From: Monocercomonoides exilis PA203
Taxonomy: Eukaryota > Protista > Preaxostyla
Length of the DNA stretch: 64,000 bases
NCBI GenBank assembly: GCA_001643675.2
Contig: LSRY02000020.1
Coordinates: forward strand, 806,001 to 870,000
Direction: 5' to 3'
Below the pieces are notes generated by a model that saw only the letters and a list, made by a program, of their open reading frames with translations, had not been told where the DNA came from and searched no databases. The translations under genes and the position numbers were made by a program. Shown piece after piece: positions 49,657-64,000 of the stretch; position 1 is the stretch's first letter; each line of letters begins with the position of its first letter.

Positions 49657-52600
49657 TCATGATAGGCGAATAACAACAGTAGAGACGTTGTCTGTCGTTC
49701 CCAGTGCAAGTGCCACGCTCTTCAGCTTCGACGCGATCTTTGCGCAGTTCGAAGGAAACGCCGGGTCAGAAAGCGGACACATCAGCAGACGCGAGTGGAA
49801 GTCATCAGCTGGCTCTGAAAACTGGTCAATGAAGGGGGAGTTGAGCGAGCATGGGGAAGAAGGCTGAGAAGGAAGGGAGAGAGGAGTCGAGGATAGAAGC
49901 ACAGGCGGCTGGGGGTGTGTAACTTGGTCGTCAGAAGAAGCAAGAGTTGTATTGGGAAAAGAACGAATGGATGAAGAAATAGTTGAAGAAGAAGAAGAAG
50001 GCAAAGAATCAACATTCATTGAAGTCAGCAAAGAAGGTGGAAGAGGAAGAGAATCAGAGCCAGCTTCAGAGGAAAGCATCTGTGAAACTGGTGACATTGG
50101 CGAAGGATGATGAAGCGGAGGCAGAAAAGGAGAAGGCGAGCCAGATGAAGGTACTGTTTGCAACAAAGAAATACTTGAAGCAGAAGAAGAATTTGATGAT
50201 GATGACGCTGGGGATGATGATGATAACAACGAAGCAGAAGAAATTGAAGAGTCAGAAGGTGAAAATACTTCCAATGAAACAGATGTCGTTGGCGAAGACG
50301 GGTTCAGAGGCATCGGAGGTGTGGTTATTGGTGTTGTTGCTGAGTCTGAAGGCGAATGCTGCTGAGAAGAGAATGCTTGGCTGTTGTTCTGAGGATCAGT
50401 TGCAGACACTTTTGCAGGTGACAATGCTCCAATCAAAGAAGAAGAAGAAGAAGAAGGAGCTGAAGAATTAGAATTTGAAGAAGAAGAAGGCAGATCCGAC
50501 AGATCCCTTGAGATGCCATCGAACATAAGAGCGCTTGCCTTCAGCTGCTCCGCAACAATCGGCGGGTTCTGTACAGCTTCATCACACGCTGCATCCGACG
50601 TGTTCTGCCCCTGTTTCTGCAGAGTCCCTTCTGCCTCGCTGTCTGATGAACTCACTTCGCTCTCTGCATTCAGCCCAATAAAGTTGGCAAAGCGGCTGAT
50701 CAGGCGGCTGCTGCTGCGGGGCGTGCTATGTGCTTTCCCCGCAGTCGCTCGCATGGCTGCCTCATCAGGCGCATCGAGCTCTTCGAAGCCGTCGCTCGAG
50801 TCGTCCGCTCCTCCTCCTCCTCCTCCATTGCTGCCGCAGCTGCTGTTGCTATTGATGATGCTGTTGGACTGCCCTCTTTCTGCCATCTGGATGAGTGGCG
50901 TCTCGTTGGCTGGCTTCTTAGGCTGCGGTGTGTCGAAGAGAGGGCTGTTGCGCTGAACAGGCATGTTTAGAAGCGGAGGAGGAGGAATGGGTGCATTCGA
51001 AGAAGAAGGTGACGACGATGAAGAAGGCAGTACATCTGGAACATTCAAAGATAAAAACGAGGGAGATGCAGCAGACAGCTGAAGAGCAGAAGATGTGATT
51101 TCTGCAGTAGATGAAGCAGAGGTGACAGCAGCATTGGCAGCTATTGCTTTGTGCATAATTTGCTCATTTGACATTTCACAGGCTGTTTCTTCCGTTTCAT
51201 CCAGCAGCGAAGGCTCGATGCTCCACCAGGGATGCTGCTGCTGGGGCAGTGCTACAGAAGGCCTGCTAACATAAGATTGATACATACCATTTCCATTTTC
51301 ATTCTCGTTCTCGTTCTCACTCACATCCGACAGAAGCTGTTTCGACCACAGCTTCTTTGTCAGCATGCGCAGTTCTTTTCTCTTGTCTTCCTGTTCTTTC
51401 TCAAACGTCACTCTTTCTTTCTCTTCCACACCCAGAACAATGGCGCTGAGGTAGTTGTTGTCCACAACATCGAACAGCCCGTCGCAGCCGATGATGAGAT
51501 ACCTGTCAACATACTCGTCTGCACTGACACTCGACATCACTGGCTCATCGAATTGAATATCTTCTCTGTTTCTGAATGAGACAAAAGAAGAAGAAGAGGA
51601 AGAAACGGAAGCTGGCGTGAAGCTGATTGTTGTGGCATTTGTTGTCTTCACCTGCAAATTGTGCATTGTGTTGTCAGTCGATGCATCAGAATTGCTTGAT
51701 ACTTCAGGAATTTGTTCAGAAGGCAGCTTCAAAGATGGTGGGCTGCATATGCTCATAACACTTTCTTCCACATTTTCAGTCGTTTTGAACGGCAGCTGAT
51801 GCTCAGTCATCCTGCAGCAATCAACACACTCCTTCGCAGAATGTTCTGATTGCTGCCGCTGAGTCTGTTGCATCTGCTGCAGTTCCATTTGTTCTATTTC
51901 ACGTTCAATATGCAATTCTTGTCGTTGAATGTGTTGTCCAGCTGATTGTGTCCAATGCTTCTCCTCTCCTCCACACAGATGTTGATGCTGCTGATGCTGT
52001 TGATATTGCTGCTGTGGTTGCTGCCTCCCTCTCAGAAACCTCTTCACCGCCAGCTTCGTCAGCTGCGCAATCGTGCCGTTCCCATCGTACTCAACACAGT
52101 TCATTTCTGGTTCATCGCTAACTGGACGAGGGAGCGTATAATTGCCAAATGCCCTTGCAACTGCAAGCACGCCGCCCAGCCGCATCTGAGAGGAAATGTA
52201 GTTCCCGTCGCGCCGCACAATCCGCTCGATCTCAGAGTGGTTGAAGAGCTTGTGGTCGTGCACGATTGCGTACGAGGCATAAGGAAACGTCTTTGTGAAG
52301 CTCAGAGAAGGCAACAGCTGCGAGGGAGGGCTCAGAGAAGGCGAGATGCGAAGGAGCGCGTTGTGTTTGACTGGAGAAGAGAAAGCGTGCGATTGCTGAG
52401 CACTTTCTTTGGATGCAACATCATCTTCTGTCTCATTCTCTTGTTTATGTTTAGAAGAGACAAAGTGCGATTGTCCTTCCATTCCAACTGTATGATTCCT
52501 TCGTGAGTGTTCATAAGCTTCCAGTTTAGTATGCATTTTCTGATGATTCGCATCCATCCCTTTCATTCCCTTCCCTTCTCCTTCATCCTGCTCTTTATCC

Positions 52601-55600
52601 TCCTTCTCCTTCCCTTCTCCGTCTCCTCCCAGCAATCTCTGAAGCTCAGCGATCTTCCGGCTGACGACACGCTGCTGCCACGAGGCAAAGTGCTCCTTCA
52701 CCACCACTGCTCTACAGTCGCCGACGTGTGCTGTGTGCACGAAGCGCGACGTGAGCAGGACACAGCAGCAGACAGACCCACCTTCCAAGTTGATGACACG
52801 GAGGGCAGACGAGGCAATGCGGAAGGAGTGACGCAGGACAAGAGACAGAAAGGGGCGCACAACTGAGTTGAAGGAGAATGTGCCTAAGAGTGGGAACTCT
52901 GAAAGTTCATTGCTCTCTGTGCGATTGTTATTCCTATCATAATCAAGATTACTACGTGAATGTGAATGTGTTTGTGAAGGTGAATGTAAATCTGAAGCAG
53001 AACTCGCTTTTTCATTGACAACGATGCTTTCCCAATCAAACTGCGGCAGCTGGCTTTCAGTGAGCTGTGTGTATGAGGCAGAAAGAAGCGAACGAGAGGT
53101 AAGCAGAGCTGTTGGCATGGGCAGAAGAGAAGACGGAGAGTATTTGTGCTCTGATGAATCACTGCTTCCACAGACGCCTGTGCAGGTGATGCTATCATTT
53201 GGGTGCTCCTCTGAATGAGGAGAAGGAGGATTAGATGAGCAGGCGTGTTCTGGTGAGTTTTTGTGATTGGATGAAATGGAGGAGGAAGAGGAAGAGGAGG
53301 TGAAGGACGATTGATTGAAAGAAGGAGAAGGAGAAGGAGAAGAGGGGAAGGAGGAAGATGATGATGAAGCAACCGACTTAAAATAGCACTGCCATTTCTT
53401 GATGTTTGTCTCTATCAGAAAATAGATGCATTCGAACAGCGACTGGATGAACGAAGGAAGAAGCAGGTGTGAAAGATGCTCTGCGCAGAAGTGCTTGTTG
53501 TGTCCGTCGCTGACTGCGTAGAAGCCGAGCGACGGAATCGGTGGTGGTGGCAGGCGGTGGCACAGACACGGATAGAGAGAGGAAAATAACTCCCAGTCCT
53601 TTTGGGTGATTGGCGGGAAGGAGGAGGAGGAGGAGGAGGAGGAGGGTTCTGAGGATGATTGTTGATGCCGTTGCTGATGTTGATTTTCGTGTTGATTTTG
53701 TTGACTTTTTTGACTTTGTTGACTTTCTTGATTTTCTTGCTGTGGAGGCGTGGAAATGGGATCTTTTGCAGAGCTGTCATTAGAAATGATTGAAGGTGTA
53801 GCAGAATAATTGTGCGTCTGTGACAAGTCAACAGTGGTGAACTCAGGACTTTCAAAGAGCGATTGTGGCACAGCTTCGCAAGAAGAAGGCAAAGATGCGT
53901 CTTGAAGCGTCGATGATGAAGAAGAGGAGGGAGAGGAGGAAGAAGACGATGAAGAGGACGAAGACGACGACGAAGAAGAAATAGAAGAACAATCCAACTC
54001 CAACTGTCCCTCATTCATTTCCCTTCCAACATTATATTTTCTCATCACTTCCTCGTTGTATTCGTCCAACTGTGTAATTCTCCTCGAAAACGTTCCGGAT
54101 GACCAGAAATGCAGCACACACGACGCCCACAGCGGAAGCACAGAGAAAAAAAGTGTTTGCGTCTTCTGAGGCTGTGCTCCAAGCGATGACTGGATGAATG
54201 CTGGCTGGAGATGAGAGTGGGGTAGCGGCGGGAAGCATTCGAAGGCGACGATGGAGAGGCAGACGTTGAGGAGGGTGTCTAAACAGCGCGATGAGAGCAG
54301 GGCTGACCAGTGCAAGGCTCTTTGCCGGTGGAAGAGATAGTGAATTGAGGTGCTGTGGTGTTGGCGTGAAGAAGAAGAAGAAGAAGATGATGATGATGAA
54401 GGAGGAGGAGGAAGAGGAGGAAGAAGGGGAGGAGGCTGTGTGAACCAGCAGGATGAAGGCCTGTGTGTGTTATAGCTGATGTGTTGTCTGTTATCTTCAA
54501 TGTTCAGATGGCTATTATTATTATTATTATTATTATAGTTATTGTTATGGTTGCTTAAGACCCCCTTGTTTTGTGAATGATCCGGATGTGGGTAGAAAGA
54601 ACCAGGTGAAGTGGCAGTGTTGCAGTGATATCGATGCGACGAGTGCGAAAGCGAGGCAAAATGGTGGCTGGTCAGCGTGAAAGGAGGGAGAGGGAGGAAA
54701 AGAGAAGAACGGGCCTTGTGAAATGGCGTGGTGAGCGTGGCGGAAGGAGTGAGACGGATGAAAAGAGGGAGAGGTGAAGATGAAACAGAGGGAAGCTTGA
54801 GATTATGTGGGGGAGAAGGTGGAAGTGAATGAAGAGTGCTGGGTGACTGTGGGCGGAGTGGAGATGGTTCGTGAGGAGCGCCAAGAAGAGGAAAAGAAAA
54901 CATTGAAAGTGAAGAAGAAGGTAAAGAAGAAGGAAAAGAAGGAAGAGGAGAAGGAAAATGTGAAGGAGAAGGAGAAGGAGAAGAAGGAGATGAAGATGAC
55001 GATGATGAAGGCGATAAACAAGTTGCTGTTGATAAGCAAGTCAACGGCGACCGCTCATCAAACTTCCCACACAGCGAGTCCAAGTGACTCACCGCTGTTG
55101 AATGTGCAGAATTCGTGTTCTCCTGCTTCAAAGATGCCATTTCGCATCCATCTGACCACAAGACAGTTGTTTCACACAGAGCAAAAGGAACAATTGTGAC
55201 TGCATCTTCCTGTGAAGGGCGTGGGCCGATTCCTTCTGAATATGCACAGAACGAAGAGGTGCTCAGAAGCGGAGGAGGTTCAAACGGAGGTTGGGGCTTT
55301 TGATGAGGGTCTGAGGTCGTTGGCAGTGGAAATGACATCGATGACTGTATTGACGCTGGCATAGGTGATTGCAATGGCGATGGCAATGGCGATGAAGATG
55401 GTGAAGCAGATGACAAATCTGCAGGAACAGGCCTCTCTACCACAGCCAGCGAGAAATGTGGTGTTTTTTCCATAGGCACGTCGATGCATTTATCACAGAT
55501 GGCTTTGTTTGAATGAGAGCAAAGGGAATCTAAGTAATGCTGGTGGTTGATGTTGAACACGCGGCTGCGGAACTGGATGCGGTTGACGAAGTGGGACGGG

Positions 55601-58600
55601 TAGTCGAACAAGGAGAAGAGAGAGACGAGGGAAGAGAGTGTCGTTTGTGGCTGAAGGGGAAGGTAGTGCTGGGAGGCTGGGCGGGGCTGGGACTGAGAGA
55701 GAGGCAAAGGCAGTGGCAGTGACATAGATAGAGACTGAGTTGGAGTAGAAGAAGAAGAAGAGGAAGAGAAAGAAGAGGAAGAGGAAGAAGAGACTGAAGA
55801 AGCAGAATAGGAAAGGAATGTGCTGTTTCCTGGCTGCTGTGTGTTGATCTGCCGCATCTGTGGTGGTGTGATCTGCTGTGTGTTTGAAGGCAGGCTGGGG
55901 CTGGCAGATGCTGAAGAAAGCGAAGAAGCAGCAGAAGAAGCAGAACCAGAATAAGAAGAAGATGACGATGAAGATAATGACGACGACGAAGACTGAACAT
56001 CTATTCGTGGCTTTGGTTTAGTACGCTCTCTCATCATTTCCATCCAAGTTGTGTTTGAGCAGAGTGGGTTTCCTGAAAGGTCGAGCATTTTCATAGCAGC
56101 CAGCTCTGCTATGGGCACATTCAGGAGCTCGTCGGCGCTGGAGATCTGGTTGTAGGAGAGATCGACTGTGGTCAGCTGGTGCTGGGGGTTGCTGGCTGAT
56201 TGGTTGGATGAAGAGGAAGAAGAGGAGGAAGAAGAGGAGGATGAAGATGAAGATGAGGAAAATGAAGAAGAAGAGGAGGAAGAGGAAGAAGAAGAAGAAG
56301 AAGACGATGATGACATCGAAGACGGCGCAGTCAAGTTCCCACGAAGCGCTGCGAAAAAATCCGATGGAAGAACCTTCAGCTTGTTTCCTGCGCATGTGAA
56401 CACAGACAAATGAGGGTGATAAATGAAAAAAGTCTCTTCGTTGTTTGGGCTGAGGGTGCTGAGGGAGGTGTGGTCGAGTGCGAGCACTTCGACAGAGGGA
56501 GGAATCATATAAAGCGGATGGCGCTGGCGCTGCTGAGGAAGTTGTGGTTGATGTTGAAGCTGTTGAAGCTGTTGATGCTGCTGTTGTGACTGCCTCTCTC
56601 TAGACGATTGGAATGCGCTCTGATCAGATGAGAAGGAAGAAGAAGATGGATGCAATTGAGCTTGAGACTGGTGCTGAAGCTGGCATTGTGCTTGTAACTG
56701 GAGCAATGTTTGAGGCTGCCCTTGTATCTGAGGCAGAACCAGCTGCTGTGTCGGCCTCGACATCTGCGTTGGATACGACAAAGCACGAGAGATTGAACTG
56801 GGGCATATAAATGTGGGTGTTCCATTTATTGTTGTGGAGACATCATGTGACAGAGGAATAGGAGAAGCGAGAGAAGACGAGACGGAGGAGGAGGCTGAGG
56901 ATGAAGATGAAGATGAGGAGATGCTGGCGCGCTCTACAGAGGCAGGCATGATGATAGCAGTGTTTGGATGTGCTGAAGTAAACGAGGCTGAAATATTACC
57001 AGGCAATTGCGCAACTGATGGAGAAATAACAGAATTTGAGGTATTTGAAGCATTACTGTTATTCGTGTTATTCATATAATTCGAGGCAAGTGAATTAACA
57101 GCCCCTGACTTGACATTCATCGAATGTGCATTTGTTGCTGCTCCCATCTGCTGAGTCTGAACCTGGGTCTGAGTCTGCAATTGTGCCTGTGCCTGTGCCA
57201 TCCCTCCAAAATGAGGCAAGGCAGTCGGCGACGGTACCACAAACGAAGGCAGAATTGTGCCCTGCATTTGAGGCGGTGGGGCAACAGGCGAAGGCACAAT
57301 CCGAACAGAAGAAGCAGAAGGAGCAGAAGGAATAGAAGAACCAGCAGGGTTTCTTCCATAAAAAGAATGTATAGTCAGTTGAGTAGGAGAGGTAGGGGCT
57401 CGAATTGCGCTGCGGGTGTTGGGGACGGAGAGTGGCGATATGCAGTTGGAGATCAAAGAAGACGGATAGCCAGAAACTGGTGCTGATGCCGATGCTGATG
57501 TGGGTGTAGATGACAATGCCGTGGATGTTGCAGCAGCAATAGCAGAGCCAGAGGCGTTTGAAGTAGCCAGTGAAGATATTGGATTCATTGAATTTATTGT
57601 GTTCATTGTGTTCATTGGATTCATAGAAGCACCTACATTTGCTGAAGGCACAGGGAAGCATCTGCTGTTCTGCATCAAGCGATTTCCGAACAGCGCAGCC
57701 GGAGGAATAACAGGAGGAGCAGCAACAGGTGGAGTGGCAAACAGCCCCTCGTTGCCCGCAAGGACGAGAGTGGTGAGTGTGTTCATCCGTCTTAGACAAG
57801 AAGGGAGCTGCGTGAGGTTGTTCCAGCTGACGTCAAGGCGGCTGAGCTTTGTGAAGGACTCCAGAGGAGATATGCGGGCAAAGTGGTTGGGCCGCTGGGG
57901 TAAGTAAGGAGAAGACGGAGATAAGGGAGAAGAAGGGGAAGAAGGGGAGGAAGGGGAAGAAGGCGACGAGGGGGATTTCGATCGGTTGGAAATGTGCGGA
58001 GAATGATGTTTTTTGCTTTGGGATGAGGGCATTAATGATGATGGCTGTACCTGGATGTTTGACAGTGGCTGGGTGATTGTTGATGTGGCTGGGACGAAAG
58101 GAGAGGAATGCAATGAAGATGCGCCCAGTGCGCTTGAACTGCTGAGATTGAGAACAGGCTTCACACGTGTCAGTGTCTGAGAGGTGATAACAACCTGTTT
58201 GGGAGAAGAAGAGGAAGAGGAAGAGTAAGAAGAAGCAGAAGAAGGAATAGAGGAAGAAGTAGAAGAAACAGAAGAAGAAGCAGTTGAATGCAAAAAATTC
58301 GCCCTTCTCGCGAGCGAGTCGCTCTGCAGAAGGTCCAAATAGCTTCTGTGTGACAGATACGACTGTGAGACAGCAAGGCTCTTCAGATGGTTGCACGACA
58401 GCAGCAGAGTCGCCAGCGACTTCTCAATGGGAACAGTCTCCTTCGGCAGCAGCAGCGGCACTGGCTGCTCTACTCTTTTGTCCTCGCGGAAGTTCGAGTG
58501 CACACCGGATGTGCTGACTGATCCAATGCCCATGCTGCTGAGAGGGTTGATGCTGCCTCCAGCACTGTTTATGCCATTAAATCCACTTATTCCAGTTATT

Positions 58601-61526
58601 CCTCCCATGCCGCCGGCAACTCCTCCGGTTATTCCGCAGTTCGGAGTGGCACCCGGCATGAAATATGACGTTGTGGGTCGTTCCTTTTCTTTCTCTTTCT
58701 CCTTCTCCTTCTCTCTTTCTTTTTCTCTCTCCTTCTCTCTTTCTCTTTCCTTCTCTTCTCTCCTGATCGCACCTTGGATCAAAGGAAGCGGCAGCTCGTA
58801 GAAACCACACGCCGACAGCCTCAGCTCATTCAGCGGTGTCAGTGCAAGCGACGGAGGAAGCGTTGAAAGAAGAGGGTTCAAAGACAAATCTAATACACGC
58901 AGCGACGTAAACATTCCCCAATGTGCCGTCCTCTGCAACCCTTTCCTCTTCTCCTCCTTCGACTCCAGCCGGCTGAACAAACTGCCCCCTCCTCCTCCTC
59001 CCCCACCCCCTCCCGTGTTTCCGATCGTCCACAGACGCGGCTCGTCTGCCTCGACAGTCTCAATCGGCGAGTCAATCAGCCCTGCTGCGGAAAGCGCCTC
59101 CATCTGCGCGGCCTGGCTCTGCTCGCGCTGCTTCGCGAGGGCAAAGCGCCTGTCCCAGTCCTCGTCGACCGACCGGAGCGAGCAGCCGCTGAGCTTCAGG
59201 TACTGCAAAGGGGATGGTCCCGAAGAAGGAGCGAGGTCGGCGGGGCTGATGGCGCGCAAAGGGTTGTGGGAGAGGTCGAGGCGGGTGAGCTGCGAGAGGC
59301 GCGGGATTCCGAGGTGCGTGAGGGACGTGGATGTGATCTTGTTGTGGGAGAGGTTGAGGCTCTCCAGCACAGGAAAAGGGGCGCAAGAGAAGGGGATACT
59401 GGCGGGGTGGCGCGTGTCCTCGCGCCGCTGGCGGAACCAGTCCAGCCTCTCCTGCCGCAGCTTCTGTGTGCCGAGGCTCTGTGGAGTGTCGAGGAAAGCG
59501 GAGTGTGGAGAGGAGTCCAGCGAGGATGAGAGGAACGAGGCGGGGTGGTCAGAGACAGAAGATGGCAGCGATGTTGAGGAAGAAGAGTGAGAAGTGTTAA
59601 AAGTTGAAGAAGAAGAAGAAGAAGAAGAAGAAAATGATGATGATGAGAATGTGCTGTTAATACAGCTGTTCTGATACAAGCTGAGCTGCCTGTGCTTCTG
59701 CTTGCGCTGGATGTCTGACGCCACGCGGTCGCTCTCGTCTCTCTCAGCCATCTCTTCCTCCTGCTCCTCAGCCTCTGTCATCCCCAGCCCTGTCCCGATC
59801 TCGTTCCAGCTGAAGTCTGCCTCGCGGAAGCTGAGCAGCACTTTGTTGAAGACGTCTCCGCGGAAGCCTACCATCACCACCTCGTCGTCGATCTTTGTGG
59901 TCTCCCACTCACCTTCGTCCACGCTCGAGTCCGTGCTGAAGAGATCGCTGGAGTCAGAAGAAGAAGAAGAGGAGGAGGAGGAGGAAGAAGAGGAGGAAGA
60001 GGGAAGTGTGGAAGATGAAGTTAAGAACGAGGCAGAAGATGAAGGAGAGGAAGAAGATGAAGACATTGAGTGTGATGCAGATGACATTGAAGGAGTCAAT
60101 GAACGTGAATTCCGAAAGTTTGAGCTCTGATACAAAAGATCGTCAGATGCTGACTGGAAAGAGGCAGGCGCAGCAGAAGGCGAACCAGGAGACGTTGGGA
60201 TGGACCAGAAAGTGCGTTCAGAAAGGGCAGTGCTTTGTTGAGTGTCATAGTGCTGTGCTAATGCATTGCTGTTATTAGAGTTATTATTGTTAATGTTGTG
60301 TTTTTGGAGAAAAGCTGATTTGGCTGCCTCGTTTGAAGCTTCAGGGCTGGGCGACTGGCGCATCCTGGGCGCTGATTCAGAGAGCGAGTGGTCGTATGCT
60401 GCTGTCTTTTGGTGTCGTATCGACGGGTTTGACTGCGAAAGCAGCTTCTGGAAGTTGTCTTCGTCTGTCTTCTTTTTCTTTTCCATTTCGGAAAAATGGA
60501 GGAAAGAGAATGCACAAAGCCTGTTTCTCGCTGCCTTCAGCACAACAAGCGACTTCATTTCCCAGAACGACGTCGGAAGGAATGACAAATAATTCCCTTC
60601 GATGTTGAGCTGTGTCAGACGCTTTAATGGATGGAAAATATTCTGCGGAAGCTCAGTGAAACGGTTGTACTGCATGTTGAGCTCCTCCAAATTGGAAAGC
60701 GAGTCAAAAATGGAAATTGAAGAACTTTCTGGAGGAGGTGATGGAAGCTCATCAAGCAAGTTAAATGAAATATCCAAAGTCTTTAAATTTGAAAACGGGA
60801 AGTAAGTTGATGAAGGAAGTTTTGATAAGCAATTATTTGATAATAGAAGTCGTTGAAGAGAAGGAAGCGGAGATCTTTGATGATATGAAAATAGTTCATA
60901 TGGAAGCTCGGAAAGCCTGAAATGAAAGAAATTTTAATTTCAATAATGTTACTTTAATATTCTTTGTGAAAAATGATAGTCAAACTGATTCCCCACTAAA
61001 TTCAGAAAAGAAAGATTTGATGGAAGCTGTCCTAATCTATCAACTGTAAATGTTTTAATGTGATTGCACATTAGTTGTAGTTCCTTTAGTTTTGTGGACT
61101 ATGAGCATAAAACAAAAAAGAAACAATGATGATTGATGAGAAGAATAAAGAAACCTTGAAAAAAGTAAGTGCAAATTTCTCAATTGAATTATATGACAAA
61201 TCAAGCATTTCAAGTGAAGGAAATGAATAAATCTCTGGTTGTATTTCTTTAAGTTGATTGACATTGACTTTTATCCGTTTAATTCCTTTATATTTGCTGA
61301 TACATTCAGGAAATTTTTCCAAACTATAAAGAATAAATATTAATTTCGAACAAATTAAATTACAATTCGTATCTGTTTATATTTTCTGTTTAAAAATGTC
61401 AAACTTATTCCTTCTTAATTCCACATTCGTCAGTTTTTGACATTGTTGGATAAATGGCATCATAAAATGGTCAAGACACTTACTGATTGCAATAAGCTCG
61501 TCTGATTTTGAATCGACATTTCCCAT
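49657..61526 (-). CDS. Giant LRR + PP2C (PPM) phosphatase, PHLPP/Cyr1-like architecture, ~3890 aa, 4 exons
   Basis: Upstream exons from ATG 61526 (MGNVDSK) carry LRRs and splice into ORF 60777-49657. Many LxxLxLxxN repeats. PP2C motifs GPRPSQEDA, FYAVSDGH, AHVGDCRAVV, DHK...EIERI, LAVARAFGN, IIGCDGLFDV and GTTDNVSTVVI. Confidence 0.9.
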
Positions 61527-61712
61527 GGAACTGTCAATACAAAAACGGAAAAAAAATACAAAATATTATGGCTTGATGTTTTCTTGTTGTTAAAGAGGTT
61601 TTGTTTGTTAATGTATTTGCAAAGCATAATAACATTTGATGTTGCAACAGGTGAGTTTTTATTGAAAATCGAGCTATTGGTTTATCGCTGATTTGGGAAA
61701 TGATCAGTTATC

Positions 61713-64000
61713 ATGAATCAACCCTTGAACGTTGGAATTGATGTTGGTTCTACCACCGTCAAGATATCTATTTTCGAAAATGGAAAACCTATATTTGAGA
61801 AATACGAAAGACACAAGTCTGAATTTTTTTTGCTGTTTAAAGTGTTGCATGTTTTATATTTTTGACACTGTTTTACAGATTTGATGTCGAAAAAACGATT
61901 CGGACTTTTTTCGATGAAGCAATGCCAATTTTGAAAGATAGATTTATTACAGTTTGCTTAATTTTTTATTTCTAGCTGATTTTGGTTAAATTTGATTTGT
62001 AGATTTGTTTGACTGGATCTGCTGGAATGCAAGTATCTGAAGCGTTGTCAATTCCATTTGTTCAAGAAGTTGTTTCATGTACACTTGCAGTTCGAAAATT
62101 ACTACCACCTGTTGATGTCATTTTGGAATTGGGAGGAGAAGATGCTAAGATTGTATATTTTACAGAAATAGATGGGCAAAAAACTGTAACATCCAAAAGC
62201 TTATCTTCTGAAACTGCAAGTTCCAGCAGTTCGACAAAAGAAGAAACAAAGCCTTGTTCATCTGCTTGCAGCTCATCATCAAATGAAAGCTCGTCATGTT
62301 CTTGCTCTGATTGTTCTTCGCCAAAAGACCGAAATGTTGCAATTGATTCTCGAATGAACACAATGTGCGCAGCAGGTACTGGTGCTTTTATCGATCAAAT
62401 GGCTGCACTTTTGGAAACTGATGCTGAGGGATTGAATAACTTAGCAAAAACATACACACATCTTTATACAATTGCTTCTCGATGCGGCGTTTTTGCAAAG
62501 TCTGATGTGCAACCGTTGCTCAATGAAGGTGTACCAAAGAGTGATGTTGCAGCTTCTGTTTTGCAATCAGTTGTCAATCAGACAATTTCTGGTTTGGCAT
62601 CTGGAAAGCCCATCAAAGGCAGAGTTGCATTTTTGGGAGGGCCTCTTCATTTTTTGAGTGAACTGCGTAACATGTTTATCAAGACACTTGCGTTAGTAGA
62701 TGAATCCGAAATCAATACCATTTTGAGCGAGAAAAGAGAACCGGAAGGCGAAGAAGGCAAAAAATTTATTCGCTACGGAACTGGCCTGCTTCCTGAGAAT
62801 GCTCAGTTTTATGTGGCAAGAGGAGCAGCGCTTTATTCAGCATCTCAAACACCATTCCCAACAGCATTTTTGCAAGGGCGTATCGAAAAGATGTCTGACA
62901 AACTGCGAGCGGCTTCGTATAAGCAGTTGCTTCCGCCTCTGTTTGAATCTGCTGAAGCTTTGAATGCATTCAGAGAGCGTCATTCACATTCAGTTGTTCC
63001 TCGGTTCAGCATGGAAAATGCGCGTGGTCCTTTGTTTTTGGGGATTGACTGTGGGAGCACAACGATAAAAGGGTGCCTGACGAACTTGAAAGGAGAGGTT
63101 GGGTGGATGTACTACACAACTCATCAGGGAAACCCGTTGAAAGCTGCAATAGACATGTTCACCAGCATGTGGACGAGCATTCTTGAAGAGCCAAAACCTA
63201 CTGAAGAAGAAAAAGCAGCGGGGAAAGGTGAAAACGGCTTTGAAAAGCCGTTTATTGCGCGTGCTGTGGCGACTGGATACGGAGAGAATCTGATCAAAGC
63301 AGCGTTTTTGGTAGACGACGGGATGGTGGAGACGATGTGCCATTTGAAGGCAGCGCAGTTCTTCCAGCCAGATGTGGACTTTGTGCTTGATATCGGAGGG
63401 CAGGACATGAAGAGCATGACGATCGATGTCGATGTCTCTGAGAAAAGTCCCAGTCCGAGCCCGAGTCCCAGTGCAAGTGCAAGCGCCAGTGCTTCATCGC
63501 AGTCTTCTTCTTCTTCTTCTTCCAGCTCAAATGACTCGGTGGAGAAGCGACGCAGAAGCGGAGGTGTCATCTCAACTATCTGCTTGAATGAAGCCTGCTC
63601 GTCTGGTTGTGGGTCATTCATTCAAACTCTGTCAGCCACTTTGGAAATGCCAATTACAGAATTTTCAGCAGCTGGCTTGCGTTCAAAGCAGCCTGTGGAT
63701 TTGGGCAGCAGATGCACTGTGTTTATGAACAGTCGTATCAAACAGGCACAGAAAGATTGTGCAACAGTGGAAGATATTTCTGCTGGACTTGCATTGTCCA
63801 TCATTAAAAATGCACTGTTTAAAGTCATTCGTATACACGATCCGAAGGAGCTTGGGACGAAAGTTGTGGTACAAGGAGGGACATTTTTGAATGATTCCGT
63901 TCTTCGTGCAGCGGAGATTGTGTTTGACACAACAGTTGTGCGACCTGATATTGCTGGGCATATGGGCGCCTTTGGAGCTGCGCTGGTTGCACAGGAGCAG
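61713..64000 (+). CDS. Bacterial-type 2-hydroxyacyl-CoA dehydratase activator / CoA-substrate-specific enzyme activase (tandem BadF/BcrA-D ASKHA ATPase domains), 2 introns, 3'-truncated by the window
   Basis: [71 protein letters not shown]. Second domain [73 protein letters not shown]. Introns ~61817-61878 and ~61952-62002. Confidence 0.92.

Follow-up and report, generated by a model that had tools for sequence, protein, structure and literature searches.

Near the end of a 64,000-nt stretch of the genome of the mitochondrion-less protist Monocercomonoides exilis PA203 (C15:806001-870000; hereafter the window), a three-exon nuclear gene of 1756 codons opens on the forward strand with an ATG at position 61713. 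We propose that this gene probably encodes a eukaryotic PlsA/Ger-type ether-lipid synthase, belonging to the single-chain PlsA/PlsR-Ger branch of the benzoyl-CoA reductase/2-hydroxyacyl-CoA dehydratase superfamily. The assignment is made from sequence, because the full domain architecture of the predicted protein equals that of PlsA/PlsR and of Ger. The gene itself has already been catalogued and is not newly discovered; what is new is the functional re-reading and the distribution of the family in anaerobic eukaryotes without the aerobic pathway. All genome searches used the Oxford Nanopore assembly of M. exilis PA203 (82,301,135 bp in 101 contigs; PMC8767320).

Gene structure, splicing and domain architecture

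The gene is real, transcribed and spliced. Position 64000 is merely the edge of the window, which holds the first third of the gene, the other two thirds lying past it. Exon 3 runs uninterrupted for 1697 codons to window-equivalent position 67093 (L004:1004-6094, where L004 denotes the downstream-extended locus DNA and the window position equals the L004 position plus 60999), with the stop codon at 67094-67096. In each of four RNA sequencing (RNA-seq) runs from one study, 88-91% of the words sampled from the locus were present. Every one of these runs (4/4) also yielded an RNA contig lying on L004:713-817, 880-952 and 1004 onward, which skipped both predicted GT..AG introns exactly and without differences. 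When mapped to L004:401-6400, the RNA contigs jointly spanned the coding sequence to ~110 nt beyond the stop codon (L004 ~6204), again without differences. Because contaminating genomic DNA cannot yield spliced contigs, these data establish both transcription and the removal of the two introns; being assembled contigs, they are silent on transcript ends and expression level. RNA 'joints' from L004:2524 to L004:5874-5882 were rejected as artefacts of the Ser-codon repeats in the insert at 63425-63556, because their sides are short, at 19-26 nt, their ends vary and foreign letters separate the two sides.

An original prediction, made from the window without database searches, had placed two spliceosomal introns near the 5' end and had named absent or unspliced transcripts and a broken downstream frame as outcomes that would speak against it. 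Transcripts are present and spliced in all four runs, and the frame stays intact past 64000. The absence of the gene from the accompanying list of open reading frames (ORFs), also remarked on there, is explained solely by the introns and the window edge.

The exons were searched separately, mostly as exon 3, and residues are numbered within that exon; the homology searches, trees and folds cover the protein from residue 60 of the full chain onward. The chain order is Act1-Act2-linker-Red1-Red2, that is, two BcrAD_BadFG ATPase domains, a conserved four-Cys linker, DUF2229 and a further module that shares the DUF2229 fold. Exon 1 gave a weak Pfam match to positions 1-24 of BcrAD_BadFG. Exon 3 matched BcrAD_BadFG (PF01869) in three stretches at E 1.4e-36 and NCBIfam TIGR00241 at 152 bits against a cut-off of 125, which places the assignment of the ATPase domains far beyond chance. 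Sequence matches in the Protein Data Bank to HadI and HgdC spanned both ATPase halves.

In the first half, Cys122 and Cys161 correspond by offset to Cys127 and Cys166 of HgdC (1hux), and in the second half Cys532 and Cys571 fall opposite the corresponding cysteines of HadI (4eht). The HgdC homodimer bridges one [4Fe-4S] cluster through two cysteines from each subunit. Since the two halves are fused in tandem here, one chain can supply all four ligands, and the protein is thus predicted to be a tandem ATPase of the acetate and sugar kinase/Hsc70/actin (ASKHA) type, with a Cys pair in each half, whose single chain can hold the bridging cluster. This agrees with the original prediction, which had described two HgdC/BcrA-type ATPase domains that each keep both Cys motifs: all four motifs are present and align with 1hux and 4eht. 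Its suggestion that the fused tandem would supply all four ligands from one polypeptide likewise gains support from the Cys alignment and the family invariance, and we count its view of the product as a cytosolic Fe-S client as supported too, at the level of sequence.

Beyond the window edge, where the same prediction had advised looking for fused DUF2229 or HgdAB-like domains, DUF2229 and a dehydratase-like second module follow in frame. A sequence search of the C-terminal half against solved structures gave no match, and no solved dehydratase among them; the likeness is one of fold only. An AlphaFold model of the C-terminal half (predicted local distance difference test score, pLDDT, 77) matched BzdO, HadC and DCCP in its DUF2229 region at Z 12-14. 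A model of the final 410 residues by themselves (pLDDT 86) matched MbdN/O, DCCP, BzdO and HadB at Z 12.1-13.1 across residues 9-406, compared with Z 8.8 or less for unrelated chains. Pfam PF06050 was not detected in this second module. Across 11 aligned family members there are 16 conserved Cys columns, all of them present in the M. exilis copy (15 invariant), and every family-invariant column is kept. The conserved cysteines include 859/901/1076 in Red1 and 1245/1280/1538 in Red2. Three cysteines per subunit is also the pattern of HadBC, and it suggests one [4Fe-4S] cluster in each of the two C-terminal modules.

Two Ser-rich inserts interrupt the ATPase half at structurally equivalent loops, which in each domain join the phosphate-2 motif to the cluster-Cys motif, and this loop is evidently tolerant of large insertions. 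The insert at 62165-62332 contains seven cysteines.

Candidate functions of the fused protein

Five features expected of the PlsA/PlsR-Ger branch at the level of sequence and fold were found in the M. exilis protein: two N-terminal BcrAD_BadFG domains, the Cys pairs for a predicted bridging cluster, DUF2229, the second module and full-length colinearity with members of ~1400-1640 aa. Its closest proteins, from Clostridia, Treponema and others, are 1405-1530 aa long and carry the same Pfam pair (36-39% identity, 87-95% coverage, >1000 bits). Sahonero-Canavesi et al. reported that Ger of T. maritima and D. alkenivorans consists of two BcrAD_BadFG domains, DUF2229 and small D/H pieces (BBD(+H)), and that it makes sn-1 alkyl glycerol ethers in anaerobic E. 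coli (PMC13159169). Irimajiri et al. showed that single-gene PlsA (1415, 1436 and 1639 aa) of E. faecalis, L. cremoris and B. longum makes plasmalogens in E. coli, as does plsA-plsR of C. perfringens, with the domains Act1, Act2, Red1 and Red2 (PMC12838417). In our literature search, DUF2229 was mentioned in bacterial ether-lipid work only; a control search with DUF2229 found matches in the T. maritima, L. lactis and B. thetaiotaomicron genomes.

The M. exilis protein shares with PlsA and PlsA-PlsR (CPE1194-1195 in C. perfringens) the domain order, a similar core length, the conserved [4Fe-4S] cysteines and the setting of an anaerobe. It differs in its eukaryotic host, its two introns and ~300 additional residues in low-complexity inserts and a C-terminal tail. 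Like Ger (glycerol ester reductase; Tmari_0479 in T. maritima), it is of the BBD type, in which both BcrAD_BadFG domains as well as DUF2229 are detectable. Sequence does not allow a prediction of which ether, alkyl or vinyl, would be formed.

By homology with these enzymes we infer the cofactor content, the electron path and the lipid substrate. The two N-terminal ASKHA domains would form an intramolecular pseudo-dimer holding one bridging [4Fe-4S] cluster on Cys122/Cys161 and Cys532/Cys571. This cluster would be reduced, presumably by ferredoxin from pyruvate:ferredoxin oxidoreductase (PFO), and driven to a very low potential by ATP hydrolysis. Electrons would then pass, probably via the conserved four-Cys linker site, to the two C-terminal modules, which share the fold of 2-hydroxyacyl-CoA dehydratases (HAD), each with a probable single [4Fe-4S] cluster on its three conserved cysteines. 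These modules would carry out two one-electron reductions and a dehydration on the acyl ester at sn-1 of a membrane glycerophospholipid, giving a vinyl ether (plasmalogen) or, after further reduction, an alkyl ether as with Ger. For the bacterial reaction, the proposed chemistry starts with two one-electron reductions of the sn-1 ester and proceeds through protonation and dehydration (PMC8788747).

Several observations weigh against this assignment. Orthology to a tested enzyme is argued from shared architecture and published family coherence, and validated PlsA is likened to the M. exilis protein by architecture, not by sequence. The 80 loci closest to a C. kluyveri family member included none from a species with validated PlsA or Ger, and the homology search with the C-terminal half returned mostly partial or metagenomic proteins, and one from C. 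tetani. The M. exilis copy is divergent, with only 36-39% identity to its nearest bacterial relatives, Clostridial family members included, and with the longest terminal branch in the tree (1.49 changes per column). The short PF06050 (HGD-D) fragments reported for Ger were not detected by Pfam in it, and PlsA and Ger are themselves indistinguishable by sequence (PMC13274423). M. exilis has three paralog types, of which the present gene is type A, ~33% identical to types B and C, and these may differ in function. Our literature search found no oxymonad lipid data. The published annotation also differs: Novak et al. 2023 enter orthogroup q2001381 in their 'S7 File - FeS proteins' as '2-hydroxyglutaryl-CoA dehydratase', a [4Fe-4S] protein assigned to 'L-glutamate degradation'. 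It comprises MONOS_1914, MONOS_3835 and MONOS_7180 together with proteins of four other Preaxostyla (Blattamonas, Streblomastix, Paratrimastix and Trimastix), so that family and organism are the same as here and the function differs. That study draws no link to ether lipids, and its main text does not discuss the family.

The annotation of Novak et al. amounts to a fused activator and 2-hydroxyacyl-CoA (2-hydroxyglutaryl-CoA) dehydratase acting in amino-acid (glutamate) fermentation. The original prediction had pointed the same way, to an activator serving such a dehydratase. This would accord with ATPase domains closest to HgdC and HadI, with the HadBC fold of the C-terminal modules and with the database names of the bacterial relatives ('2-hydroxyacyl-CoA dehydratase' or 'acyl-CoA dehydratase activase-related'). 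However, these names are automatic and family-wide, and every tested member of the BBD architecture in the literature found makes ether lipids, not enoyl-CoA (PMC13159169, PMC12838417). The known HgdC/HadI systems pair separate homodimeric activators of 260 aa with heterodimeric dehydratases (HgdAB, HadBC) that act on CoA esters, whereas the M. exilis protein is one 1756-aa chain with a DUF2229 module, not a stand-alone activator. The ATPase fold, the cluster cysteines and the three-Cys pattern are shared with these systems and, by inference, so is the logic of ATP-driven low-potential electron injection; for the C-terminal half the likeness to a solved dehydratase lies in the fold and does not extend to a sequence match. 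A six-frame search of the M. exilis genome found no match to PF06050 (the HgdAB/HadBC-type subunit), with control matches in E. coli and M. jannaschii. It also found none to PF01144 and PF02515, the family I (GctAB-type) and family III (HadA/FldA-type) CoA-transferases needed for a CoA-ester substrate, with control matches in six genomes each; in an intron-bearing genome such absence is not absolute. The partner CoA-transferases for which the original prediction had suggested a search were thus not recovered, and its fermentation role found no support. The name '2-hydroxyglutaryl-CoA dehydratase' was not found in the text of the papers on these protists that our literature search covered. We consider the fermentation enzyme quite improbable, and the dehydratase label, in the public annotation as in the original prediction, is probably wrong.

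An ATP-driven Fe-S reductase of the same superfamily that acts on another substrate is unlikely too, but deserves more serious attention. It could carry out a DCCP-like reduction or be a neo-functionalised paralog, with ether lipids made by the type B and C paralogs only, or not at all. DCCP is among the best fold matches, the type A copy combines a long branch with low identity to types B and C, and what additional PlsA homologs do in bacteria is itself unclear (PMC13274423). Against this stand the retention of all family-invariant residues in copy A and its conserved orthologs in three genera of Archamoebae, which indicate a maintained function, and characterised DUF2229 members with a different activity were not found in the literature. 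DCCP/DCCP-R and the class I benzoyl-CoA reductases (BzdNOPQ, MbdONPQ) belong to the same superfamily, match in fold and have an ATPase partner of the same type; they are, in contrast, multi-subunit enzymes with different substrates and resemble the M. exilis protein at the sequence level in the ATPase domains only. A contaminant of bacterial origin in the assembly, or a dead pseudogene, would fit the bacterial type of the sequence family and was rejected on the spliced RNA contigs, leaving it a negligible probability. The gene also sits inside a 1.49-Mb contig between eukaryotic genes, its GC content at third codon positions (GC3) is 0.47 against 0.50 in the neighbouring giant host ORF, its Ser-rich inserts are typical of the M. 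exilis genome, its 1756-codon frame is intact and its catalytic residues are conserved. Taken together, these comparisons lead us to favour a PlsA/Ger-type ether-lipid synthase.

Relatives, origin and lipid biology

The family is dominated by prokaryotes, with thousands of bacterial homologs and a handful from anaerobic protists. Among the best matches of the M. exilis protein are those of the Archamoebae Pelomyxa schiedti (two proteins), Mastigella eilhardi and Mastigamoeba balamuthi. A profile search of the M. exilis genome found exactly four DUF2229 loci of three divergent types: the present locus (type A), two almost identical loci on C1 and C43 (type B) and one locus on C36 (type C). Types B and C are ~54% identical to each other, and the best match of type B is from Blattamonas nauphoetae (49%). 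A look-up in the ESM Atlas returned family names only.

Trees built with FastTree, with IQ-TREE -fast under LG+G4 and as a 25-row quick tree under LG+C20 with posterior mean site frequencies (PMSF) agreed with each other. Type A grouped with Mastigamoeba, Mastigella, one Pelomyxa copy and one metagenomic protein (support of 100 in the Shimodaira-Hasegawa-like approximate likelihood-ratio test, SH-aLRT), and types B and C grouped with Blattamonas (100). The sampled bacteria fell together on one side of a branch (97-99.8). The trees are unrooted, contain long branches, sample only near relatives among the bacteria and point to no particular donor or number of transfers. The phylogeny proposed in the original prediction has delivered the eukaryotic groupings and the separation from the sampled bacteria. 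That prediction's idea of a domesticated lateral transfer is upheld by the bacterial-type family, the spliceosomal introns, the host-like composition and the transcripts. The gene is of bacterial descent and has since become fully domesticated, with introns, host codon composition, Ser-rich inserts, transcription and splicing; the host-like GC3, the introns and the inserts show that it has long resided in the genome.

The type B pair lies at C1:~1076000-1083000 (+) and C43:~777000-784000 (-). Its open frames encode 2290 and 2314 aa and its branches in the tree measure 0.001-0.006, so that the pair indicates a recent segmental duplication. Both copies are extended at the C-terminus by ~800 residues with a high content of Glu, Lys and Ser. 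A type B locus (L018:8900-10000, -) has two short 5' introns, one of them near the position of intron 2 of the present gene, just before a conserved G-S-G-G motif. The other, after a P-F-x-Q-E-V motif, has no counterpart in type A, and intron 1 of type A has none in type B, which argues that the introns were largely gained independently after the paralogs split. The metagenomic protein in the type A clade (P0001, from the 4484-nt contig L104 of JGI metagenome 3300026161) is cut at the contig edge near the exon-3 start site and is sister to one Pelomyxa copy (SH-aLRT 99). It probably comes from an uncultured anaerobic amoeba, the alternative being a bacterial relative of the donor.

Plasmalogen synthesis is viewed as O2-dependent in eukaryotes and as reductive in anaerobic bacteria, and we know of no eukaryotic enzyme for anaerobic plasmalogen synthesis. 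Our literature search for PlsA, Ger or plasmalogens in protists and other eukaryotes found no paper linking PlsA to eukaryotes. A genome search for PF10520 (PEDS1-like) gave no match, and its control likewise matched nowhere. A 2026 survey found the aerobic plasmalogen genes to be absent from Metamonada and Archamoebae, without mention of PlsA (PMC13012113); the present gene occurs in these same two groups, within Metamonada in Preaxostyla. Two anaerobic protozoa build plasmalogens without dihydroxyacetone phosphate (DHAP), according to Prins and Van Golde (1976) as cited in Goldfine's review, in which old labelling data place the divide between anaerobic and aerobic organisms and not between prokaryotes and eukaryotes (PMC9702350).

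A broader proposal is that Preaxostyla (Metamonada) and Archamoebae (Amoebozoa), which belong to two unrelated supergroups and lack the O2-dependent pathway, make plasmalogens or alkyl ethers by a laterally acquired and misannotated PlsA/Ger, present in at least two ancient eukaryotic lineages, of which the copy A lineage would be common to M. exilis and Archamoebae. We regard the case for and against this proposal as evenly balanced. A shared copy A lineage would imply either that the gene passed between eukaryotes or that it was captured more than once from a single donor group. If the proposal is true, it would give a molecular basis to the 1976 finding of DHAP-independent plasmalogens in anaerobic protozoa, make the membrane chemistry of mitochondrion-less, anaerobic protists directly testable, correct the glutamate-fermentation annotation in Preaxostyla and Archamoebae genomes and give the cytosolic SUF/CIA machinery of M. 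exilis one more Fe-S client, a large one with multiple clusters. The 2026 survey concluded that plasmalogen genes were lost or never present; if the family is PlsA/Ger, those lineages would instead have replaced the pathway by gene transfer. If our functional reading is wrong, the locus would still be a well-documented but ordinary anaerobic enzyme derived from lateral gene transfer and already catalogued.

Feature coordinates and neighbouring loci

Table 1 Features of the M. exilis gene in window positions; positions past 64000 are window-equivalent.
Feature	Position	Strand	Description
Exon 1	61713-61816	+	Start codon, 34 codons + 2 nt; ASKHA phosphate-1 motif of ATPase domain 1; RNA contig pieces on 61712-61816 in 4 runs
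Intron 1	61817-61878	+	62 nt, GT..AG, phase 2; skipped in RNA contigs of 4/4 runs
Exon 2	61879-61951	+	73 nt; RNA contigs; colinear with N-terminal consensus of bacterial homologs
Intron 2	61952-62002	+	51 nt, GT..AG, phase 0; skipped in RNA contigs of 4/4 runs
Exon 3, part in the window	62003-64000	+	Remainder of ATPase domain 1; ATPase domain 2 almost in full; RNA contigs without differences
Ser/Cys-rich low-complexity insert, eukaryote-specific	62165-62332	+	56 aa; ATPase domain 1, between phosphate-2 motif and Cys motif; absent from 8/8 bacterial alignment rows
Predicted cluster-ligand cysteines, ATPase domain 1	Cys122 62366-62368; Cys161 62483-62485	+	Align with the two Cys motifs of HgdC 1hux (HMMER); invariant in 11/11 aligned family members
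Ser/Pro/Ala-rich insert, eukaryote-specific	63425-63556	+	44 aa; equivalent place in ATPase domain 2
Predicted cluster-ligand cysteines, ATPase domain 2	Cys532 63596-63598; Cys536 63608-63610; Cys571 63713-63715	+	Cys motifs of HadI 4eht (HMMER); invariant in 11/11 family members
Linker cysteines 736/739/743/764	~64208-64294	+	Conserved C-x2-C-x3-C...C set
DUF2229, first module of the HAD/benzoyl-CoA reductase (BCR) fold (Red1)	64424-65086 (C15:870424-871086)	+	Pfam PF09989, E 1.8e-58, profile 1-218, full length
Second HAD/BCR-fold module (Red2), residues 1185-1594	65555-66784	+	Fold match
Low-complexity Ser-rich C-terminal tail	to 67093	+	Eukaryote-specific

Directly upstream of the gene, on the opposite strand, lies an open frame of 3706 aa (window 49657-60777, -) with a leucine-rich-repeat-like N-terminus, very long Ser/Gln/Pro low-complexity tracts and PP2C-phosphatase-like motifs near its C-terminus. 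Downstream, two AT-rich frames of 208 and 179 aa (L004:7090-8473, -; window-equivalent 68089-69472) lie in a region of 25-32% GC; they are rich in Lys, Glu and Ile and may be exons of one gene.

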